A stretch of 63,454 nucleotides of DNA, counting the filler, from Choristocarpus tenellus KU-1152 (taxonomy: Eukaryota; Protista; Phaeophyceae): NCBI GenBank assembly GCA_964200185.2. It is 11 parts of 11 records of this genome, joined end to end, with 100 filler letters (N's around TTAATTAATTAA, not from the genome) between each part and the next. Parts side by side here need not be neighbours in the genome. Positions count along the whole stretch, not along the records: positions 14,771 to 24,630 come from CAXNAD020003326.1; 10 more parts are not named here. One strand, given 5' to 3'. A program made the translations under genes and the position numbers. The notes beneath the pieces were generated by a model, which was not told the origin of the DNA, ran no database searches, and saw only the letters and a list, made by a program, of their open reading frames with translations. Each line of letters opens with the position of its first letter. Position 1 is the first letter of the stretch. Shown here in pieces: positions 1-25,570 of this stretch.

Positions 1-412
1 CCCTTGGCGCGGGCCACACGAGCCCCCGCGGTGGGTCCCCCCCCCCCCCCCCCCCCCCAAGATACTTTGGGCCTGAAACCCATCACTAAGACAAAAAAAA
101 AGCTCAAACACACACGCTACACAAACTCACCCCCACAACTGATTTGATTCCGAGGTATGAGCGGAAAGGGAGGGTATTAAAAAGGATGATTGGTCCTCCT
201 ATGCATGCACACAGCGTCACTTCAAAACAAAATACTTCAAAAAAAAAAAAAAACACTACTCTGTTTGCTATCACGTTAAATTTTACTCGTATCATTATTA
301 TTATTATTATTATTGTATTCTACTTTATTACCATTCTTATGACGCAATTGCTACGAGTGAAGCAGCTCACTGGCAATAAATAAGACAACAAATGGAAACT
401 TAATATATATAT

Positions 413-443
<31 letters not shown>

Positions 444-695
444 TTCCACTGAAAGAAAAAGTTCGAGCAGCCAAACTCACCAGTTCTCGATCAGGGTCAC
501 CCCAATCATATTCCACACCCCCTCGAACATGAAGAACTGACACCGAATCTTCCTCCTCTACACTGCTGCAGCCCTGCCCAACGTTGGAGAATCTGGCATC
601 CGAGGGGGTTCTTTGTGAACACTATGATAATATACAAGATAATATACATGATAATATACATGAACATACGTGTGTGTGTGTGTGTGTGTTGTGTG

Positions 696-854: not shown

Positions 855-984
855 TATTTTTTCCAATCCAAGAAGCAGGGACATTGTCATGAAACCTCAT
901 TGTACAACTCAATATAGGGTAGTACTGGCTCCGACAGGAATTCACTCCTTTGACCCCAACTACTCCAATTACATCAAGAGTACA

Positions 985-1290
985 TAATTACAACTACTAA
1001 TAATATTACTGTTTTACTATTACTATTATTATTTATTACTGTGATTTTTCCACCATTATTACTACTACTGTAGTTTATTGTTATAATACTATTACCATTT
1101 ACTACAATTATTTTTACTATTATATTTATTATATGTTACTGTAATTTTTCCACCACTATTACTACTACAACAATTTGTTGTTATAAAACCATTACCATTT
1201 ACTACAATTATTGTTTTACTATTATTATTACTTATTATTATAATACTATTACCATTTTTTACAATTATTGTTTTACTATTATTATTGAGC
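985..1290. repeat. AT-rich degenerate (TAC/TAT)n low-complexity repeat
   Basis: Recurring CCATTTACTACAATTATT and TTTTCCACCA motifs. Confidence 0.8.
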
Positions 1291-1483
1291 AAAAGGTAAT
1301 TACAGGGGCGTAACACTGTCATTCGATCAGCACCTCTCACCTCCTAAGATCGCAAGACTTTATAGCACACAGTCCACACCTGCTGAGTGCATCTTGTCTG
1401 TGTCGTGAAAATCGAATATTCCGTTCACAAAAGCGAGTTATCCTTATCAACGCCTTTTCTTCAAGTGCCTTCATCATCTAATA

Positions 1484-2009
1484 TTAAAATATTGGATTAT
1501 TATTATACTCAACAATACTACTATCAAAGCAATGTTATACTCATCATTACTATTAGTAAAGTATTGAATTATTGTTATACTCAACAAAACTACTATCAAA
1601 CCATTGTTATGCTCATCATCACTATTATTAAAGTATTGGATTATTATTATACTCAACAATACTACTATCAAAGCAATGTTATACTCATCATTACTATTAG
1701 TAAAGTATTGAATTATTGTTATACTCAACAAAACTACTATCAAACCATTGTTATGCTCGTCATCACTACTAATAAAGTATTGGATTATTATTATACTCAA
1801 CAATACTACTATCAACACATTGGTGTACTCCTCATTGCTATAATTAAAGTATTGGATTATTATTATACTCAACAATACTACTATCAAAGTATTGTTATGC
1901 TCATCATTACTACAATTAAAGTATTGGGTTATTATTATACTCAACAGTACTATTATCAAAGCATTGTATTGTTAGTATCATACTCATTATTTCTACTATC
2001 AAAGCATTG
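1484..2009. repeat. 72-bp minisatellite, about 7 units
   Basis: The ATTG of the AAAGTATTG motif recurs at 1491, 1563, 1635, 1707, 1779, 1851 and 1923. Confidence 0.95.
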
Positions 2010-14632: not shown

Positions 14633-15264
14633 TGTCATGTATGGCATGTGCAAGGGTGCCCCATTCGCACNNNNNNNNNNNNNNNNNNNNNNNNNNNNNN
14701 NNNNNNNNNNNNNNTTAATTAATTAANNNNNNNNNNNNNNNNNNNNNNNNNNNNNNNNNNNNNNNNNNNNTAAGAACAAGGGCAAGTGCTAAGACGCACA
14801 AGACAATGGACCTGTTCCCTTCCTTCATGCGCCCCCTCACCTAGACACACTGGTTTGCCCTCTCTCAAGAAGAAAAGAAAAAGACTGACGACTGCACTGA
14901 TACAAAAAAAAACATCAACAGAGGCATTGGCAAACACAGAGTTAAATGGATGATTTTCAAAGAAGCGCTCACCGGGCCTTGACGTGTATACATGTAGTTT
15001 TGTGTCCTCCTCTGGCAAGTTCTTTATTTCAAAGGTATAATTACCACATGTTGAAGACAGACAAACCATTAGCATATGAACTCTATGATGAGTGCTCCCG
15101 TTCCGGCACTGGTAAAGAGGAAAGCTCTATACTAGAGGCCATAGGTGCCATTATACTATGTGAGCCAACTCGACGACTGTGGACTCACACAGGACCAAGA
15201 TCAAAAATACCCTGCCAAAAACAAGGTAATAAGAATGGTTAACTCCTCCACCCCTTCGTCCCAC

Positions 15265-15987
15265 CTGCATTCGGGCAGCCAGCTCCGTTACATTTGCTGC
15301 TAGCTTGGGGTCACGTTTCATGACCGACAGCACCCTTCTCATGTCCCTTTGCGACAGTCCTCTCTCGAGTAAGAACATCAGCATATTGTTTTCATGAACT
15401 TCAGTGGAGTCGATTTTCCTTCCCCTCTGCTCACATTTCCGCAACGATCCTGACTCTTTTCCTTTTCGGTTACGAAATTGGGGGGAGTTCGGAGAGCTAA
15501 CAGCCCTCCCCTCTCCATCACGGTCCCGTATCACCCTTGACCATCGCCAATCGCGGCTTTTCCATCCCCGTGAATCGCCAACCTCCCCGTCCATGAAGGG
15601 TATAGATTCTTCGATACCTAAATGCCGGAAGGGAATGGCATCTGTACTATCCTCGCTGACCGAAACGTTTGTACCTGTTGAAGTTCTGTTGTCAATTTCT
15701 GTCTTCCTCACAGCATACACTGCAACAGCACCAGATTTTACCGTAGTTCTCAATGGATGTCTACTTTCTCCTTCTTTGCTTGACCTCCCTCCTCTAAGCT
15801 GTGGCAATCCACGCCGGGATTGCCCCAGGCGCAAGCTTCCGCCCCCCATGCTCCACCCCAGGTCGAGGTGGCAGTGCTGGGAGGTGAGGGCTGTGGTCGA
15901 TCCCGACAAACCAGTGACGAACAAACCAACAGTTACCCCTCTAGGAATACCAGAGCAACCCCATGGTCTTGCTCTCTTTCCAGCCAT
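15265..15987 (-). CDS. First exon of a probable organelle-targeted mTERF-family protein
   Basis: ATG at 15987, then a hydrophobic signal-like N-terminus and a basic transit-like region. The exon ends in FLLERGLSQRDMRRVLSVMKRDPKLAANVTELAARMQ|GTGGGA, which resembles an mTERF repeat. Downstream exons lie beyond the contig end. Confidence 0.5.
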
Positions 15988-17063
15988 CGAGAGATCAGCA
16001 TCCACCCAGCCCTGCTTAATTCACGGCTACTACACCAGAGAACAGGAAGTCCAGCGAGGCACACGCCATAAGCACGGAGAAAGTCAAGAGAGCTCCACAC
16101 AGTGGTAGCAACACCACCTTTGCAAGGTTGGAAACAATGACATTTTTAAAATTTCATGGGAATCTCTCCTCTTGCCTCTCTCCTTCGTCACTCCTTTGAG
16201 AGATGGTGGGTGGTACGTGTACAGGACGATAGTACGACCTACGTAGCAAAAACCAGTTCATGTTGTTTGAATTGTAAAGAGATGGTGAGGCATGTTTGAT
16301 CTTTTGTCAACAACATTGTATTAACACTTCACTGAAAGTAATACATACCTACATAAATGTAATAGGTAATAATGGTTCACTAGAGGGACCTGCAAGAGCA
16401 GTAACTGGGCATAGTGGCCAATGTGCCTACACTGTACCATGCTTATAGGAAGTCCTGTCCAATTCATTTTACTTGGACTGCCAGATCTCTTAAGATCTCC
16501 CATTATATCAAGCACATTCTACAATCCTTTTGAAACTACACTCTGCAACAGATATTTGAACTGTTGGGACAGTGAGGTGGGACAACGACCGACCGGCACA
16601 TCCCTTAGAGATTATAACTAACGTCAGGTTTCACCACAGAAAAAGCTATCCTTTAGATGCATTTCCATCTTACGGATGCCATCAATGTATAAGGAATGGC
16701 GTTGCGATATGATTCAGACATAGTTGAAGGCTTAGCAATGGGCCGAATACTGCCTAACATGGGGAATAAATGTCCTCTATAGGGCTGTTTTCTCTTCTGT
16801 GTAGAATATTTTTAACGTGCTGAACTCTTTTGTTCTTCTAGAGCCCAATTCCTTTCTGCAGTTTTGAATGTTTTATACTGATAGGGATAGACTATCGTGG
16901 AAGGTTGTGCAGGTGTTACGTAGTTTAATTCATGCGACCTTGAACAAAGACAAAAGTTATACCTGCTAGGATTCTAAATGCTTGCAAGAAGCAAGCGATC
17001 CTCGTCTAGCAATGCGTTGCGTTCAGCAGGTGTGTCGAGTGTTGTCTTCCTCCTATACCATTG

Positions 17064-20000
17064 ATGCATGGAACCTGCACGCAATCGACATTATTTGCTG
17101 TTCTACCTACCAGCCCAACAAATTCTGTTGCACTGTTGTCGCCTTTATCTCCAAAGAGGATACAGATTGCGATACTCCCTCTACATCCTTCCTCGAACTC
17201 AATATTCAGGCTCCTGGAGAGGGAACAGATCCTCAAGTTAGGCTCCGGCTAAGGGCTACACCGTATGTACCACACAGGAAAGGGGACACAATTTGCCTTG
17301 CGCAACAAGAAGAAGCGAGAACGCTGGGAATGGTGTGTTGAAGTGTTCTTGGTTCTACAGGGCTCGTGCACATTCCCGGATTTTCCAAGCTTGACAACAA
17401 GGAGTGCGAGACACTTTTTTGGAGCACGACAAGCATTAATTCACATTGTTCCATTTGCCTCTGACCCCCCCCCTGTCAACCTCTTAGAATGCACCAGTGA
17501 CTGACCCAAATATCCATTCATTGGATCAATGCGTTGTTCTCATGGCAGGCTAGGAGATGCTGTCTTGATTGAAGTGATTGCACGCCTTCTATCCCATGAG
17601 GCGATCGAGGCACTTGAGAGAGGGAAGGAGGGAAGCAACGGAGTCCCTTCATCTTTGCACCCGCTAGAGCATCGTCTTGGCAGAGGAATAGCATTAGTGG
17701 TAAGCAATGCCAACCTCGCTCAGGTCTACATGTCGGAGCTTCCAGGCCTCACAGCCTTCCTGGGCTTGGGCGAAGAGCGAAAGCTTCCCCCTGATGGTCT
17801 TCAGCATACAACATTTGTGGAGGACACCATATTAGGGAGTCCTTCAAAGGGCATAGACAAGCGGTTGCCGGATTTGGTTGAATCTTTGATTGGCGAGGCA
17901 TTTGAAGACTCGCTCAGGCTTGCAGGGAGAGACTGGAAGGCTTGCCATTTTTCCAATGGTTGCAGGTACACAAGATCGGTGGTAGTATATCTGTTGTGAT
18001 TTGCTGATGAATGAAGCACATTAGTCACAGTTCATGCATTTCCTTTAGTAATTGCTTTGCATGTTGCATGTGTGCAATGGGTTGCTTCTCTTGGGTAGTC
18101 TCTTCTTCTGAGAGAGGTACATTCGATCATGACATGTATTGTTTGAGTCCTTGCTGTGACATTTTTTTTGTTATCCTACCCCCTTATTTTGACCAGGGCT
18201 GCTCTGGTAGGGCACCTTGTTGCTGCAGCTCTTAGCTCAGAGCTCTTAATATCATGGTTAGCTTCAAATGGTCCAGCAGAAAGAGACACAGATAGGTCAG
18301 AATGGCACACTAACAGGTTTTCTGCCTTAGCCAATGCATGTGGGGAAGAAGGCGATGGTGACCTTTTTGGTGCCGAGAATGAGCCTGACTGCTACAGCAA
18401 TCATGGGAAAGATGGTGACCTCCTATATTCAACAAAGAAAGCTAGTGTTAAGTGTGGTCTTGATACCCAGCCTGAGGGGGACAAGATGAAGTTTGCTGTA
18501 AATGAGTCCTCAAGTGACAATTGTGGCGTTCCTTGTGTCATGAACGACAAGAGATCAAATCAAGATAGTCCCAGTAGGTCAAAAAGTGATAAATCCCCCC
18601 TCCATCATCCGGACTCTCTTACTATCATGAGGGATCGCAGTGAGGTTTTCCTCAGTGGGAATATCCATGTTAACTACACTGCAGATAGGGATTCCAGTCT
18701 CATACCCACCCGTCCATTTCCCTCTAATGGGGATCCCCTTCATGCCACTGATGGAGATCCTAGCCCCATCCCTAACCCATCACACCCCAGGGTTCATGCA
18801 CTTACCTTCCCTGCTGATGTTGATGGTGATGCCATGACTGTTGCTGATGTAGGCAGGAGAGCTGTGTATCAACACTATGGTGCTTCTCTCTTGAGGTTCC
18901 GTGTGAGCCTGTGTTTGTATCTGTCAGGGTGTGAGGGGGTGCAGCAAGGCCCTAAGGAGCTCACGATGAGGCGTCAGCATGTTATGTGTGCTGAGAACCT
19001 TGAGGAAGTTGCTCTGGAGCTAGGCCTAGGGAAGGAGTTGAGCAACCAAGGATTTAGGCATAGTGGTCAGGACAAGAGGAAGAAAAATGAACAAGGTCGA
19101 GACTGTTATGGAGGGGATCAACTAGAGATTGCAGCACAAAAAAAAACAGTATGTGGGACTGGACCAGAGCAAGGACGGAGGTTGGGGGGAGAAATCAAAG
19201 ACCTCTCTTTGGCGAATGCCCTTCGTGTAGCAGTGGGGTACGCAGAGTTGACCAAGTTGGGTGATGCAGGATTCAGCTCCAAGGTTGTATCAATGTTGCT
19301 CTCTCACTCAAAGGTGGAATGTAACAGTCTGATCAGAGACCCCCAGGGAAACAGGGGGAGAGCAGGGGAAGTGCAAGGTAATGAAGAACTCAACCCGGAA
19401 CTAGAATTTTCCATTGGCGGAGAAGATAAGGGGGGTTCAGCTAGATGCCAGGGCCAGAAAGATCAGAGGTGTGAGACGGTGGGACTAGCCTACTGTTGCG
19501 ATCCCTGGCCCATAAGTGAGCTCCCTTTGGCGAGAAATGCGGCTGCACGACTATTTCACAATAGTTTAATGAAGGGTGGACTGAAAGCTGCCGCAAAAGG
19601 AGACTCGAGCAGGAAAGATGTTGGTTCTAGCGATGACCTCAATGTCTACAGCCCTACTGAAAGTAATGACTGCCTTCAACGGAAGCGAAAACGTGGGACA
19701 AGGTTTGTGAACCAGCCTCTGAGTGGCAGAGATGCAACTCCTGCAGCGATCCCTGAGAGGTACGTTACTCTGGTGGAATGCCTGCCTGGGGAACAGCGCC
19801 GTCTGCTAGCTCGACTGGGTCATCATGAGTATGTCAAAGTCCTCGAGACTCTTTTGGGCCAATTTGTCTCCTGCTCCCCCCCAGGCTCTCCAACCTCCAG
19901 TTTGATGCTGAATGTGGAGCCGGACTTGAACCTGGACCTGAACCTGGACCTGAACCTGGACCTGAATCCGGACTGGGAGTCAGCAGGCTTTCCCCCTGAC

Positions 20001-20549
20001 TGTCAAGATGGTGTGGTGTCTTCAAGTGTCCCTTTTTCCCGATTGAACCGCCTCCCATGTACTAGTACCACCTCCTTGCCCAGACCTTCAGGTGAGGGGT
20101 TAACAGAATTGCAGAGTCAAGATTGTAATGAGAGCACACAAGACGACGGTGGGGTCTGGTTGGCTTTTTGTTCAGGAAGGGCTCATCCGTCTCTTGCTGG
20201 GCTAGTAGAACCTCTCTGCCTCGCAGCACACAGTCCTGAGCAGCTTGTGTTGCCCATTCCAAACCCCTTCTATCGTCGAGTTCTCCATGCTCTTTGCTCT
20301 ATCCATGGTTTGTGCTCAAGTGGGGGTGAGATCAGTGGCGGAGGTGGGACAGGGGGTAAGATAGTGCGCCTCACTAAGAAGGAAGGCAAAGGTGGTCGGG
20401 GTAAGGTTAAAGGGCGGCACCGCATGGTTGAAGTGACTAGACCTGCAGTCAGGGTTAGGGAAGGTAATGTGGGGGCTTTGGGAGGGCTTCTTATCCCTGT
20501 GGAAACTCTTCTAGGTGGTGGGTTATCAGAAGACAGGTCCAAGGTTTGA
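17064..20549 (+). CDS. RNase III-family protein: active RNase III domain, degenerate second RNase III domain and C-terminal R3H module
   Basis: An exon ending at 17332 spliced to exon 17549-17965 gives RERWEW-LGDAVL…VVSNANLAQV…KRLPDLVESLIGEAFEDS. A phase-2 intron joins exon 18197-20549, which contains a second RNase III-like segment (about 18790-19310) and NPFYRRVLHALCSIHGLCSSG (R3H). The 5' end is uncertain because of an in-frame TAA at 17250. Confidence 0.8.
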
Positions 20550-23119
20550 ACCACTATGTTGTTGAGATCAGATACTGTGGTCTTTTGAAAGTCATATTCT
20601 GCCGTGTTATGCAGTTGTTGTGCTGCCTCTCTATAATCTCTTCTACCCTGCGGAAAGATATTCCTGAGTGAGGATACATGTCCCTGGGCTTCCTGTTCAG
20701 CTTTTCGGTTGTGTATGCGACCTATTTTGTCCTCTTCATGGCATGATGCTCTTCAGCAAGAGGTACGTAGGCATTTAAGTTATCCGCGTTCAGAGAGCTG
20801 GAGCAGTCCAGAATTTGCTTGATAGTCAATGGGGAGGTATTTTCCATGTAAGGTGCTGTTGTGCTAGTATATATATGTATAGGGATTGCTGTAGAGAGGT
20901 TACTTTGATCCTAAGGGTAAGAGGTCCATGCAAATCTTTTTTCAGCGCTGCCAAATTGGTGCGTGCTTTGTAGGACATGAAAAGTATACTCTGAGAGTTC
21001 TTTGTGAAGACCTTGGAGTTGCCAAAATATGGACAGCGTATATGTGTGCATAGTCGGTGTCACCAAGGTAATATGGCAACTGAGAAGGGTCAAGACCTTT
21101 TCCCACCCCGGGGTGAATGGAGAATATCTTTCTTTTTAGTTCTTTCCATTAGTGTATTTTCTTGAGGAGGATACCTTCTTTTTTTTGTATTCTATGCTAT
21201 TAATAACAGTATATGGAAAATCGATAGGATTTTGTGATAGTTGATTGTTCTCACTAGAGCTCATTTGAAGATTCAATAAATATCTTTTTCCTCGATGTGG
21301 GAATGCCACCTGTTGATGGTAGACAACTGCACTGATACTTTGATTTAATGTTTTGTTATTTTTTGTATCTGCACTTTAGTCTTGGACTAGGAGCCTACAT
21401 TGACGCTATCTAGCCCTGACCTGTGGTCAGAGATACTGCACACTATACTACTTCCCTATACCTATGAACTAGCTGTTCAACTACAACTAATTGCACTACC
21501 CTGTGTGTGCCTTACATCTTTCTGGTACACTGGGTTCAGCCATCCATCTTCTTGTAGCCTCACTTCCTACATCAAATCTTGTCCAGTACTTGCTTAGCAT
21601 TAATGAACCTTTCCCATCACGATTCAGGTTGTCTACATCCCTCTTTGTGATTTTAGCAACAGTCAGTTAGGTACAGGTTTACTGTTGTGATGTGGTTCCC
21701 ATGTGGTCCATTGCAATCAAATGTCCCTTTAAAATATTTTCTGACCTTGGCCGGGTTTGAACCTGTACATTCCTTTGATGGAACTGGGTAAACTGTCACT
21801 GAGCTACGGGATTGGTCAAGAGCTCTCATTAGGTACTGTGGAAAGCAACCTCCCTGTGCTGTTACTTCAACATGATGTATTTTTCCACATCAAAGCACAC
21901 AAAACTTACTTTGTTTGAAGTATATCTGCTGTGCGGTCTTACAGGTGATGATCTCAGAGGGGGACTCCTCGTTACAGAGACCTGTGGCCCACATGAGGTG
22001 ATCACAGGAGTGTGGGAGGGAAGGAGAGGGGAAGGTGTGAAGTGGAAGGAGGCCTGTCATGGCTGGGTGGGAGAGAGTGGTGGATGTTCGATGTGGAAGT
22101 CAAGAGGATTGAAGTTTGTACTTTGAAGCACTCCTGCAGTAAGTTAAGAGGTATACCTCAAACCACGTTACTTCCTGTGTGTGCACCGACCGTATTGCAC
22201 TGTGTGGGGTGCGACTGACTGTCGTCTACAATGGGTTTGTACGGTATGTTTGCGGTTGTTGAGTTGATTTTTTTTTTCTACAGCCTGTGCTCTGCACACG
22301 CCTTCGAACCCTTTTTGATTTCAACGGTGCTGAGGCAGCATCTTGACTGTAAGCGATGAACAAACTCGTCTCAAGAGAACATTCTGACAGGGCCTGACCC
22401 TGCTATTCACCTTGTGAATCCTCAATTCGGCGTTGACTTTCACACCATGTATATGATGCAGTCTGGACTGCCTCTTCCTGGGCTGAACCTGTATCATGTA
22501 TGCTGTTTTGTGATAGGGTTACAGTTTAGTCAGCAGTACTGTATGACTACGTAAGAAACTACTGACACTGTACGTTTAATTTTGTATATATACCCTTGGC
22601 GGTTCATGTTGCAAATGTCATACTCCTTCGCCGATCGTTGATTTATTGGCCTGTGGAAATGAGGAGGCGCCTGGATTAGTTCACAGCCTGCCCTGCAGAA
22701 GGGGCCCTATATATTTTTTTCTGTAGTGTGCGAAGGCACTTGTGTTTTGCCATGCTATGCAATGCCATGCCATGCAATGCACCGATGAGGTGCATTTTGT
22801 TGCGAGTTGTGGATCATGCAGGACCATCAGTGCTGCATCTGGTGAGGTCATTGCATAGTCCGGAGTAGATTTATCAAGGTGCGATTCGATGCCATGAAAA
22901 TGAGAAATGAAAGGTGTTCCAAAGGGGTTTCGATTTTGATCCTAATCAGAGGTTTTGGAAGGAGCGCTTCTGAACAAAGATGTCAAGAGGTGGCAAGTCA
23001 GCTCGTGACGGCTAGTGGACGAATGCCTTACCTGCCAGTAGTGCCTATGTGTAGATGTCTAAATACCCATGAATCTTCATGTACATCCACCCGAAAGTTG
23101 TTTTTTTAAATATTATTTA

Positions 23120-24430
23120 TCTGGTATCCGTGTTCCGATATATTTGGGCAAAGTGGATGTTCAGGCAAAGCTTGAGAGCTGGTGGTTTGGGTTCTCATGA
23201 CGAGGGAATACTGACACATTTGTTTCTGTGAATGTTTCCTATGAACTGTTGAAGAAGGCATCGGATCCACTTCTTTGAAGTGAATTAGACTTAGAATTCT
23301 AGTGGAACCTGTTGAGGTTCCAACTCTTAACAGAAAATGACTGGTGGATTGTGACCAATGAGGAGGTTTGCTTGGGAGGTTTGTGGTGGATTCATTTGAC
23401 CAAGTTTGTTTAGAGGCATGTGGTGTCTTTGAGGGGTGGTTTTGGTGTAGCAAACAAAGGTGTCGCACCCTTTTTCTCCTATTTTGAAAAAGGTTGATAC
23501 TTGTATTGCCCTTCAATGTTTCATCCATCACAACTAATATGTGAAACGCTGGAGTATGAACTGTGAAAGGACGGACTACGGAAAAATCAAGATCAATAGC
23601 TCAATCGCATTTCATGTTCTTATTCTGAGCTCTGCTGTAGAGTAGAAGGCCTGCAGTTCCACTTGATCTTGAAGACTTCAATTCTCAAAGTACCGTTTTA
23701 CTTAACATTGGAGTGCTTTGCGTTTGAACCTTTATGAAGATATGCTGTCAGGAGTGTTCGTCATCATTACACTGTCAGGTCTGGCCTAGAGGAAACAGTT
23801 ACAATAACTTTTGTCCCCTCAATTACTTGAAATGACACTAATCCATGGCTAGTCCTTTGTGCAGTCAGACCAGTACCACATGATTGTACATGGTATCCTC
23901 CAATTACGAAGCAATGAGACAATGGGTTATACTTCACTCGAGGAGCTCATTTGCCTCACAGGACTGTGCTGTATACTTTTTTGTTCTGAAGCCCTGGAGG
24001 CGTATGACTCTCTTGGGTAAACAGCCATAACCCTTGAGTTGTACAGTTCAGGTGTTGGTTGCCGATTGAACCACCCCAGCATTTGCACCTCTTTCAGAAT
24101 GTGGATTCACCTTCTCCATGCAGTAGAAAACCCCAAGTAATGAATTATTTTTTGTTACCACACAAAAAAAGGAAAATGGCCAGACCTACCCAGGTCAACA
24201 CACACATACTTCGGATACTTTCGTTCAAAAACTTACTCTGCACAACTTCTTCCAACATCCACACCTTCAAGACCATCCCATTCCAAACCAGCAATTTGAC
24301 AAAACATGCTTTGGTTTTGAAAAGGGGGGTCGGCATGGACAGTTTCAACTACTCCTGTGGTACAGAGTTTATTGCTGACAGAAAAAGGTGTATTCAACAT
24401 ACATTTGGCAGTATCTTGCATTATCATACA
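23120..24430 (+). mobile_element. Highly decayed Ty1/copia-like gag-protease relic
   Basis: Fragments GIRVPIYLGKVDVQAKLESWWFGF (gag-like) and EFIADRKRCIQHTFG (eroded W.xDSGAxxH protease motif); many stops. Confidence 0.3.
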
Positions 24431-25570
24431 CTATTGCGGACAAAAGCTGTCCCAACATATTTCTGGTCCCTATTTTTCCCCCTCTAGTTGCATTTGAAAT
24501 AAGCTGAGGCATATAATGTAGAGGCCCTCCTGTGAATCCGGCATGGGGTTAGAGGGCAAACAAGCAGTGTGTGCCCCTTCTTTACATTGGATAAGCTTAC
24601 CCCCCCCCCCCCCCCCCCCCCCGTTTATGCNNNNNNNNNNNNNNNNNNNNNNNNNNNNNNNNNNNNNNNNNNNNTTAATTAATTAANNNNNNNNNNNNNN
24701 NNNNNNNNNNNNNNNNNNNNNNNNNNNNNNCCCCCCAGATACTTTGGGTCTCATATTACACATTTACACTTGCTCTCATAGTGCATACCCACTCAAACAC
24801 AAAATAATTGTGAACATCAAATGCTACCATTGGAGTGATCAATGGTGACATCTTTGCATGTAAACAGGACCTGGAAGATGATGAAATTCTGCTGGGCATG
24901 TTGGCAAGGGGAATCTGCCAGGTGAACCTCTTTGATGGGAAGATGAGGAACATCAGCATAAACTAGTCAAATGGAATAGGAGGATCATCATGTGAAGATG
25001 AGGTTGGCATTTGGCACTATTTCATCATCAGCATGCTCCTGATATCTGAGGCAGAAACTAAAGGTCTCAGACCATCGCGAGTGCACCTTGATATATGCAA
25101 ACAAGATGATTCTGCAGACCCTCTCACGGTGTAATCAGGAATCGTTTCATTACGTCATTGGGGTAGTCTATTTGAGTTTGAAGCCTTAAGATTAATAGTG
25201 TGCATAAAACGAGAATGCAATTACAATTATGAAATGGAAAAGTTGAGCACTGTTGAATGTCTGACGGAATGAGGGGTGTTGCATCGACTTGCCAAGTACT
25301 GTAGTCTCACTATCCCTGTGAAACACACCAGATGGTAGCTATGAACCTGGTATGAAACCTGATTTTCACTGTATATTAACCCTGCTCAATAAAAAAACAG
25401 GAGCAGGATTTTTGAATGAACTCATAGTGGCTTTTAAGTCATTGCAAACAATTACTATTACTACTCTCAACCTCATTCACAAGGAAGCCCTGAACACCCT
25501 AACACGTCTGTAGCCAACAATACCATTGTCAGCGCATCCTCCTGACTCACCCGCACCATATTTCTGACAG

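Follow-up and report, generated by a model that had tools for sequence, protein, structure and literature searches.

The stretch of DNA analysed in this study (the window; 63,454 nucleotides (nt), filler included) consists of 11 parts from the genome of Choristocarpus tenellus KU-1152 (Phaeophyceae; GCA_964200185.2) joined end to end. The gene described herein lies on the part at positions 14771-24630 (CAXNAD020003326.1), a piece that is eukaryotic in character, with a GC content of 40-55% and GT..AG introns. An earlier reading made from the sequence alone (the sequence-only reading) had placed two RNase III domains, one active and one dead, and an R3H motif in one protein at 17064-20549. We found that the half-dead tandem RNase III with an R3H-like tail encoded here is the product of a real, spliced gene on the + strand, where all features of the gene lie, with three coding exons. 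The proposed architecture was borne out, its R3H part as probable, and we consider it very likely that a single protein combines one live and one dead RNase III domain with an R3H-like tail.

The coding sequence joins 17265-17332, 17549-17965 and 18197-20549 into 2838 nt with the reading frame kept, giving 945 codons and a stop. Exon 1 (17265-17332) encodes M..FALRNKKKRERWE and the first two bases of a Trp codon, and the orthologous proteins P0001, from Discosporangium mesarthrocarpum, and P0014, from Nemacystus decipiens, begin alike. Exon 2 (17549-17965) holds the core of the first RNase III domain (domain 1), and exon 3 (18197-20549) runs to the stop codon at 20547-20549. Both introns, at 17333-17548 (intron 1; 216 nt) and 17966-18196 (intron 2; 231 nt), are GT..AG and of phase 2. 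Intron 1 splits the RNase III signature: its donor, TG/GTGTGT, lies at 17332/17333 and its acceptor, ..GGCAG/G, at 17548/17549, so that the Trp codon is divided TG/G.

Three sequencing runs of a single study (X1, X2 and X3), none of them on record as RNA, hold this stretch. Contigs of X3 skip 16577-17209, 17333-17548 and 17966-18196, all of which are GT..AG once the cut offsets are applied, whereas X1 and X2 run colinear with the genomic sequence. As X3 skips the introns and has a depth of 0 in the bin 17346-17539, within intron 1, it behaves like cDNA. The coding joints in its contigs are 17331>17548 (cut +1), with a side of 124 nt, and 17962>18194 (cut +3). The splice from 17332 to 17549 that had been proposed from sequence, giving ERWEWLGDAVL, is therefore present in the X3 contigs with GT..AG borders, and the presence of both junctions places 17549-17965 and 18197-20549 in one gene rather than two. 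The joint at intron 2 is independently backed by orthologue proteins that are continuous across it and by a Discosporangium intron at the same place.

Upstream of the coding sequence, X3 contig 13 covers 16485-16577 and defines the 3' end of a 5' untranslated region (UTR) exon at 16485-16576, with a GT at 16577. This exon is followed by a 5'UTR intron of 633 nt (16577-17209; X3 joint 16574>17208, cut +2; GT..AG) and by the untranslated start of the first coding exon (17210-17264; X3 contig 15). The start at 17064 given in the sequence-only reading falls inside this 5'UTR intron and has to be replaced, with the exon starting at 17210 and the coding sequence at 17265. The transcribed exon 17210-17332 contains, in the frame of ERWEW, a TAA at 17250-17252 ahead of the ATG at 17265, which obliges translation to begin at this ATG, with no upstream coding extension. 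It follows that the protein begins at RNase III domain 1, which leaves no space upstream for a helicase or PAZ domain. At the other end of the gene the 3'UTR occupies 20550-20762, and X3 contig 17 extends to 20764. A further 26 loose letters of contig 17 match 21947-21972 exactly, leaving a GT..AG gap of 1182 nt (20763-21944), which is either a 3'UTR intron about 213 nt past the stop codon or a splice into a downstream unit on the + strand.

The catalytic motifs of domain 1 could be read directly from the spliced sequence. ERWE (17319-17330), carrying the equivalents of E38 and E41 and followed by the split Trp, is joined to LGDAVL (17550-17567), which carries the equivalent of D45. VSNANL (17700-17717) follows, and PDLVESLIGEAF (17868-17903) supplies the equivalents of D114 and E117, its D, E and G being invariant in 8 sequences. 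The last helices of the domain, R-AALVGHLVAAALSSELLISWL, are encoded by the start of exon 3 (18197-18275) and align with VDRLLSxALSTE of all orthologues; their counterpart in the model of P0001 is formed by helices 152-174, which have a low predicted local distance difference test score (pLDDT). Throughout this work the window was searched by single exons, relatives were used as stored orthologues, and structure models were made mainly for P0001. ER.EWLGD, VSNANL and DKR.PD.VE..IGEAFE.SL are kept in every sequence that covers domain 1; the block DKRxPDxVExxIGEAFExSL is invariant in 8 sequences, and ER(Y/L)EWLGD occurs in P0001, P0014 and P0028, the last from Ectocarpus sp. 12.

Domain 1 of P0001 scores 31.4 bits with the Pfam Ribonuclease_3 profile (PF00636) and so exceeds the cut-off of 27. 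The match places residues 13-128, beginning at E13, on profile positions 1-95, and this alignment fixes the equivalents of E38, E41, D45 and D114/E117. P0014 and P0028, which have long inserts, score 14-15 bits, below the cut-off. The window exons searched singly against Pfam gave no domain 1 match, as expected for a domain divided among three exons; feature leads from the Atlas for exon 2 point to RNase III (0.87-0.90). The sequence-only reading had held that all four metal-binding acids of an RNase III are present, and indeed they lie across the junction supported by X3 and are kept in all orthologues that cover them. Retention of the four acids across deeply diverged brown algae suggests that domain 1 is catalytically live.

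Domain 1 is followed by a poorly conserved linker (18276-18824) that is predicted to be disordered (pLDDT < 50 in the P0001 counterpart) and has no Pfam match. Beyond it lies domain 2 (18825-19340), an RNase III fold by prediction with its acids replaced and a variable insert between helices. As had been proposed, QHYGA (18870-18884) stands in place of EFLGD, and within ANALRVAVGY (19212-19241) ANALR stands in place of ADxxE; between them lies VMCAENLEEVA (18981-19013), and all three were read directly. The family consensus of the domain is AGR..VLRLYGAALL.FRVSVFLF ... GP.ELTMRRQ.VMC.ENLEAVA ... AR.WMRVAVGRAAL. Pfam Ribonuclease_3 matches domain 2 of the window with E-values of 2.7e-4 to 3.8e-4 and 21.6-22.1 bits, below the cut-off of 27, and matches it in 4/16 family members. 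At profile position 7 the Gly of YGA is put on the Gly of LGD. On this alignment D45 is replaced by Ala, E41 by Gln in the window or Arg in most other members, and E117 by an invariant Arg, and no family member has kept the acids.

We built an AlphaFold2 (AF2) model of P0001 on 25 sequences, in which domain 2 is predicted at pLDDT > 90. The RNase III fold that had been proposed for 18790-19310 is thus predicted in the P0001 segment equivalent to 18825-19340. In a Foldseek search with this model, 25/25 rows were RNase III proteins. When domain 2 of P0001 was compared on its own using VIA, it matched Rnt1p (Z 8.3, root-mean-square deviation (rmsd) 2.8, 107 aligned), the Pichia stipitis Dicer 7dey (Z 7.5) and K. 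polysporus Dcr1 (Z 7.0-7.2), and Atlas features score 0.89 for the domain. These results indicate that domain 2 is a catalytically dead domain, with a predicted RNase III fold. The Atlas feature list for domain 2 is topped by DUF3871 (PF12987; bacterial and phage clusters), which is also listed for exon 2; DUF3871 may itself be an RNase III-like fold.

The C-terminal half opens with a conserved box, DPWP..LP.A...AA..F (19500-19556), in which W and A are nearly invariant. A basic cluster, RKRKR (19680-19694), resembles a nuclear localisation signal and is conserved in alignment A4. It is followed by a conserved three-helix box, P.(R/H)Y..L...LP...R.LLARLGHH.YVKVLE..L..F (19752-19865), modelled at pLDDT 80-91 in P0001 (residues 636-675). 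This box has no Pfam match, and its profile gave only chance rows against the PDB sequences. Further on, at 19920-19974, an in-frame microsatellite encodes (LN/LD) repeats within a disordered spacer, and these repeats have no counterpart in the orthologues. The repeat unit is 12/24 nt, and one short contig of X1 ends at 19966 in sequence that does not match; the microsatellite may vary between copies or may break assemblies.

The R3H-like domain (20244-20441) comprises LVLPIPNPFYRRVLHALCSIHGLCSSGGE, a Gly-rich loop and a last strand, RHRMVEVTR (20415-20441). Within 20244-20330 we read NPFYRRVLHALC..GL and NPFYRRVLHALCSIHGL. The R-x3-H is part of YRRVLH, with R at 20274-20276 and H at 20286-20288, and both residues are invariant in 16 sequences. 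Together with GL.S.GG and the last strand RHR.VEV, the invariant R-x3-H characterizes the family. In the model of the window domain the order is strand-strand-helix-strand-strand, with a core pLDDT of ~85 and the R and H at the start of helix 41-53. Pfam R3H matches 11/16 orthologues at E <= 0.1 (best 0.0019), never above the cut-off. Among known R3H folds, 2lrr was ranked third by Foldseek (template modelling (TM) score by target 0.56) and reached a VIA Z of 4.1, followed by 2cpm (Z 4.0) and 9lrg (Z 3.7), and at 18-26% these three had the highest identities in the fold searches. The C-terminal R3H motif that had been claimed thus stands as regards the invariant R-x3-H and the recurrent Pfam matches, but the scores stay below the Pfam threshold and the fold search is weak; on balance we consider the domain likely to be an R3H domain. 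The protein ends with a conserved motif, LIPVETLL, and a short tail before the stop codon (20490-20549).

The resemblance to the R3HDM4-associated region that had also been suggested did not hold up: R3H-assoc (PF13902) has no match at E <= 10 in the window pieces or at E <= 1 in 17 orthologous segments. A single weak shape match (TM 0.43) was to a fungal cluster, 28% of whose members have PF13902. Pfam scans for PAZ, platform, helicase and the domain that binds double-stranded RNA (dsRBD) gave no match in the window pieces or 25 relatives. Along with the in-frame stop upstream of the start codon, this agrees with the earlier statement that PAZ, helicase and dsRBD are missing from the protein.

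A word-based search with exon 3 gave no relatives; an exhaustive HMMER search then gave 20 representative relatives, 13 of them at E < 1e-30. A word-based search with domain 1 of P0001 added only three further fragments, all brown algal, and no canonical RNase III. All relatives with a source name, among the 20 representatives and the three added fragments, are brown algal. In addition to P0001, P0014 and P0028, they include a member from Ectocarpus siliculosus, Esi_0031_0069 (P0016; UniProt D8LKV8), which is named "R3H domain-containing protein" in UniProt, and members from Sphacelaria, Undaria, Scytosiphon, Hapterophycus, Laminaria and Ascophyllum. The relatives carry no functional name and are already public as unnamed or hypothetical entries, and an NCBIfam search gave no match. 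The same motifs recur in the same order, with the same architecture, across the brown-algal orthologues. Found only in brown algae and the organism of the window, the family appears to be lineage-specific, as the sequence-only reading had thought possible.

The Discosporangium locus (L001) has the same three coding exons, with both introns at the same positions and in the same phases and with the signature split as ERYEW/LGD; identity between its protein and that of the window is 57% over exon 2 and 38% over exon 3. P0001, P0014 and P0028, which are independent full-length models, run continuously across intron 2. Most public orthologue models, by contrast, begin with MVDRLL, which is the start of the long last exon, and lack the RNase III exons that encode the N-terminus; the Ectocarpus model P0016 is without the signature exon. 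Since the public models drop the RNase III exons, the family has been annotated at most as an R3H protein and has gone unnoticed. P0001 itself is marked partial. At L001 4482-4700 its frame in fact continues across the last R3H strand (RHRTVEVSR), only to shift within long G runs ahead of the conserved LVPVETL, which looks like a homopolymer assembly error.

The relation between the two RNase III domains was assessed on the P0001 model. The best VIA row was human Drosha (9asn_A; Z 14.6, rmsd 3.8, 170 aligned), with residues 6..491 of the model matched to 959..1256 of the chain, and human Dicer (7xw2_A) was matched at Z 12.3 (7..487 to 1309..1845). Both alignments span domain 1 into domain 2. 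We also submitted P0001 1-171 and 330-495 to a two-chain complex test, which covered this one combination of domain 1 with domain 2 plus 3 controls. The pair scored 0.75 versus 0.00 for the best of the controls, a mark attained by 51/78 solved complexes and 2/108 mismatched pairs. The complex runs agreed in at least 64% of contacts, the partner pLDDT was at least 65, and the predicted interface consists of the two signature helices. Domains 1 and 2 are therefore predicted to form an intramolecular pseudo-dimer as in Drosha and Dicer.

In Drosha and Dicer the tandem RNase III domains pair within one chain, and each domain of an RNase III pair cuts one strand; single-domain RNase III enzymes are homodimers. 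By analogy, the protein described here would form a Drosha-like pseudo-dimer with one working active site in its processing centre. With only one site at work, it would cut a single strand of an RNA duplex, or one strand at a junction of single- and double-stranded RNA, instead of dicing both. The conserved RKRKR cluster is the one pointer to location and suggests a nuclear enzyme. The conserved helical box and the divergent R3H-like domain would replace the dsRBD and probably hold single-stranded RNA beside the duplex, and candidate substrates are ribosomal RNA precursors (pre-rRNA), small nucleolar RNA (snoRNA) and small-RNA precursors. Taken as a whole, a nuclear RNase III that works as a live/dead pseudo-dimer and cuts one strand of, or beside, a duplex is the reading we favour, with moderate confidence. 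More speculatively, brown algae and their kin could have evolved a nuclear RNase III class of their own, a monomeric nickase that an R3H-type binder of single strands, in place of a dsRBD, would direct to its target; it would carry out a step for which other eukaryotes use Rnt1- or Drosha-type enzymes. If so, such a nickase would make, for example, the first single-strand cut of pre-rRNA, snoRNA or hairpins resembling primary microRNAs (pri-miRNAs).

Several observations weigh against this interpretation. X3 behaves like cDNA and yet is not on record as an RNA run, and the intron 2 joint rests on a short side of 26 nt in X3. In comparisons with the PDB sequences, phmmer retrieved no RNase III for exon 2, exon 3 or domain 1 of P0001, and the domain 2 and R3H-region profiles retrieved no RNase III or R3H entry; a profile comparison of domain 1 with domain 2 (hhalign) was not significant, the aligned stretch being only VSNANL/VMC.ENL. 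The R3H-like domain of the window scores 12-14 bits (E 0.052-0.18) against a threshold of 26.8 for Pfam PF01424, and its R3H fold matches (Z ~4) do not exceed unrelated rows of Z 4.0-4.9. As for the structures, most of domain 1 in P0001 is modelled at low confidence (pLDDT 30-60), the E-values of the Foldseek rows with this model are > 1, and a Z of ~14 can arise by chance with helical models. Success in the complex test may stem from solved RNase III dimers that the model remembers, and it denotes likeness, not binding. The structure and complex predictions, moreover, are those of the Discosporangium orthologue, at the identities to the window protein given above.

The protein could instead homodimerise by way of its live domain 1, in the manner of bacterial RNase III, Rnt1 and budding-yeast Dcr1, with two active sites and double-strand cleavage and with domain 2 serving as an RNA-binding element or scaffold. 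Domain 1 has the full catalytic set for this, the homodimer is the established form of single-domain RNase III enzymes, and a linker of ~180 disordered residues does not force the two domains to pair within a chain. However, in the full-length model and in the two-chain test alike, domain 2 sits against the signature helix of domain 1, the canonical dimer face, and domain 2 retains its own signature helix and fold under strong conservation despite its lost catalysis. Given also the one-chain pairing established for Drosha and Dicer, we regard a homodimer as unlikely, though it is the most serious competitor to the intramolecular pseudo-dimer.

The protein might also be catalytically inert, an RNA-binding or chaperone protein whose RNase III folds serve only for gripping RNA, comparable to RNC1 of plants or the RNase III-like mitoribosomal proteins. 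Domain 2 is dead beyond doubt, and domain 1 is very divergent outside its motifs, with no RNase III in the PDB retrieved by phmmer; the four acids and surrounding motifs that domain 1 has kept across deeply diverged brown algae would nevertheless be hard to explain without catalysis, which makes this reading improbable. We give even less credence to an artefact, in which two neighbouring genes, a small RNase III and an R3H protein, were misjoined or a canonical Dicer or Drosha with upstream exons was truncated. The start of most public orthologue models at MVDRLL, the beginning of the long exon, and the 26-nt side of the intron 2 joint would be expected from a misjoin, but the joint is GT..AG with the frame kept, P0001, P0014 and P0028 are continuous across it, and Discosporangium has its intron at the same position. 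Truncation is at odds with the in-frame stop at 17250-17252, which excludes an upstream coding extension, with orthologues that begin at the same residue, and with the lack of a helicase, PAZ or dsRBD match in any member. Such an artefact is thus highly improbable, and the live/dead pseudo-dimer remains the reading that we carry forward.

In the neighbourhood of the gene, a 4084-nt X3 contig covers 15600-16204 and continues to lower coordinates, so another transcribed unit lies upstream. The long overlapping open reading frames (ORFs) at 15151-16005 (- strand) and 15404-16108 (+ strand) have no Pfam match; the neighbouring ORFs gave no Pfam match of note and thus say nothing about the taxon. 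An Rfam scan of the piece reached no gathering score. A run of 23 C at 24600-24622, at the very end of the piece, may be the cause of the contig end.

RNase III enzymes are classified by domain architecture, and a live and a dead RNase III domain in one chain with an R3H-like domain in place of a dsRBD fit no usual class. Our literature search found no paper on an RNase III plus R3H architecture and none on the Ectocarpus accessions, and reviews of the small-RNA machinery of stramenopiles and macroalgae make no mention of a brown-algal RNase III/R3H family. This is in line with the earlier remark that no protein of such architecture has been described, with the sequences themselves already public as unnamed or hypothetical entries. 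Brown algae evolved microRNAs and complex multicellularity independently, and to our knowledge their RNA-processing machinery is barely known. The enzyme proposed here would be a testable candidate with clear predictions, namely a monomer, a cut in one strand and nuclear localisation.

When compared with known systems, each part of the protein has relatives from which the whole departs. Its C-terminal domain resembles those of the R3H proteins Smubp-2, SPAG7, bacterial KhpB/Jag, PARN and R3HDM4 in having the R-x3-H in a strand-helix unit, with GL.S.S.G and a last strand after it, but differs in a long Gly-rich insert before that strand; in the literature searched, none of these proteins was reported fused to RNase III domains. 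Domain 1 shares its fold and catalytic motifs with class 1 and 2 RNase III enzymes (Rnc, Mini-III, Rnt1, Dcr1), which unlike the proposed pseudo-dimer are homodimers with two active sites and mostly have a dsRBD. The plant chloroplast protein RNC1, a splicing factor, has two RNase III domains that are both non-catalytic. It thus provides a parallel for tandem RNase III domains retained after the loss of catalytic residues, whereas domain 1 of the brown-algal protein has a full active site. Drosha and Dicer, which gave the best structural matches in their human forms, resemble the brown-algal family in having two RNase III domains in one chain, which are predicted to pair through their signature helices in the algal protein as well. 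The family differs from them in that domain 2 is without its acids in every member, so that one strand would be cut per binding event, and in that dsRBD, PAZ, platform and helicase are missing and the C-terminus is R3H-like instead. Minimal two-domain Dicers are found in Trypanosoma, Giardia and Tetrahymena and have been reviewed (PMC3145265).

The closest match, in mechanism only, is found in the kinetoplastid editosome, in which a live RNase III of the KREN group (KREN1-3) is paired with a degenerate one (KREPB4-10) and cuts one strand of the duplex, the pre-mRNA (PMC9181182). KREN and KREPB are separate proteins of a mitochondrial complex that carry U1-like zinc fingers and PUF motifs, whereas the brown-algal family has both domains in one chain, is probably nuclear and carries an R3H-like domain. 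Neither a U1-like zinc finger nor PUF nor a dsRBD gave a Pfam match in the window pieces or relatives, and no sequence relationship between the two systems was detected. The brown-algal enzyme would accordingly be a version in cis of the live/dead pairing of the editosome, and hence a natural RNA nickase.

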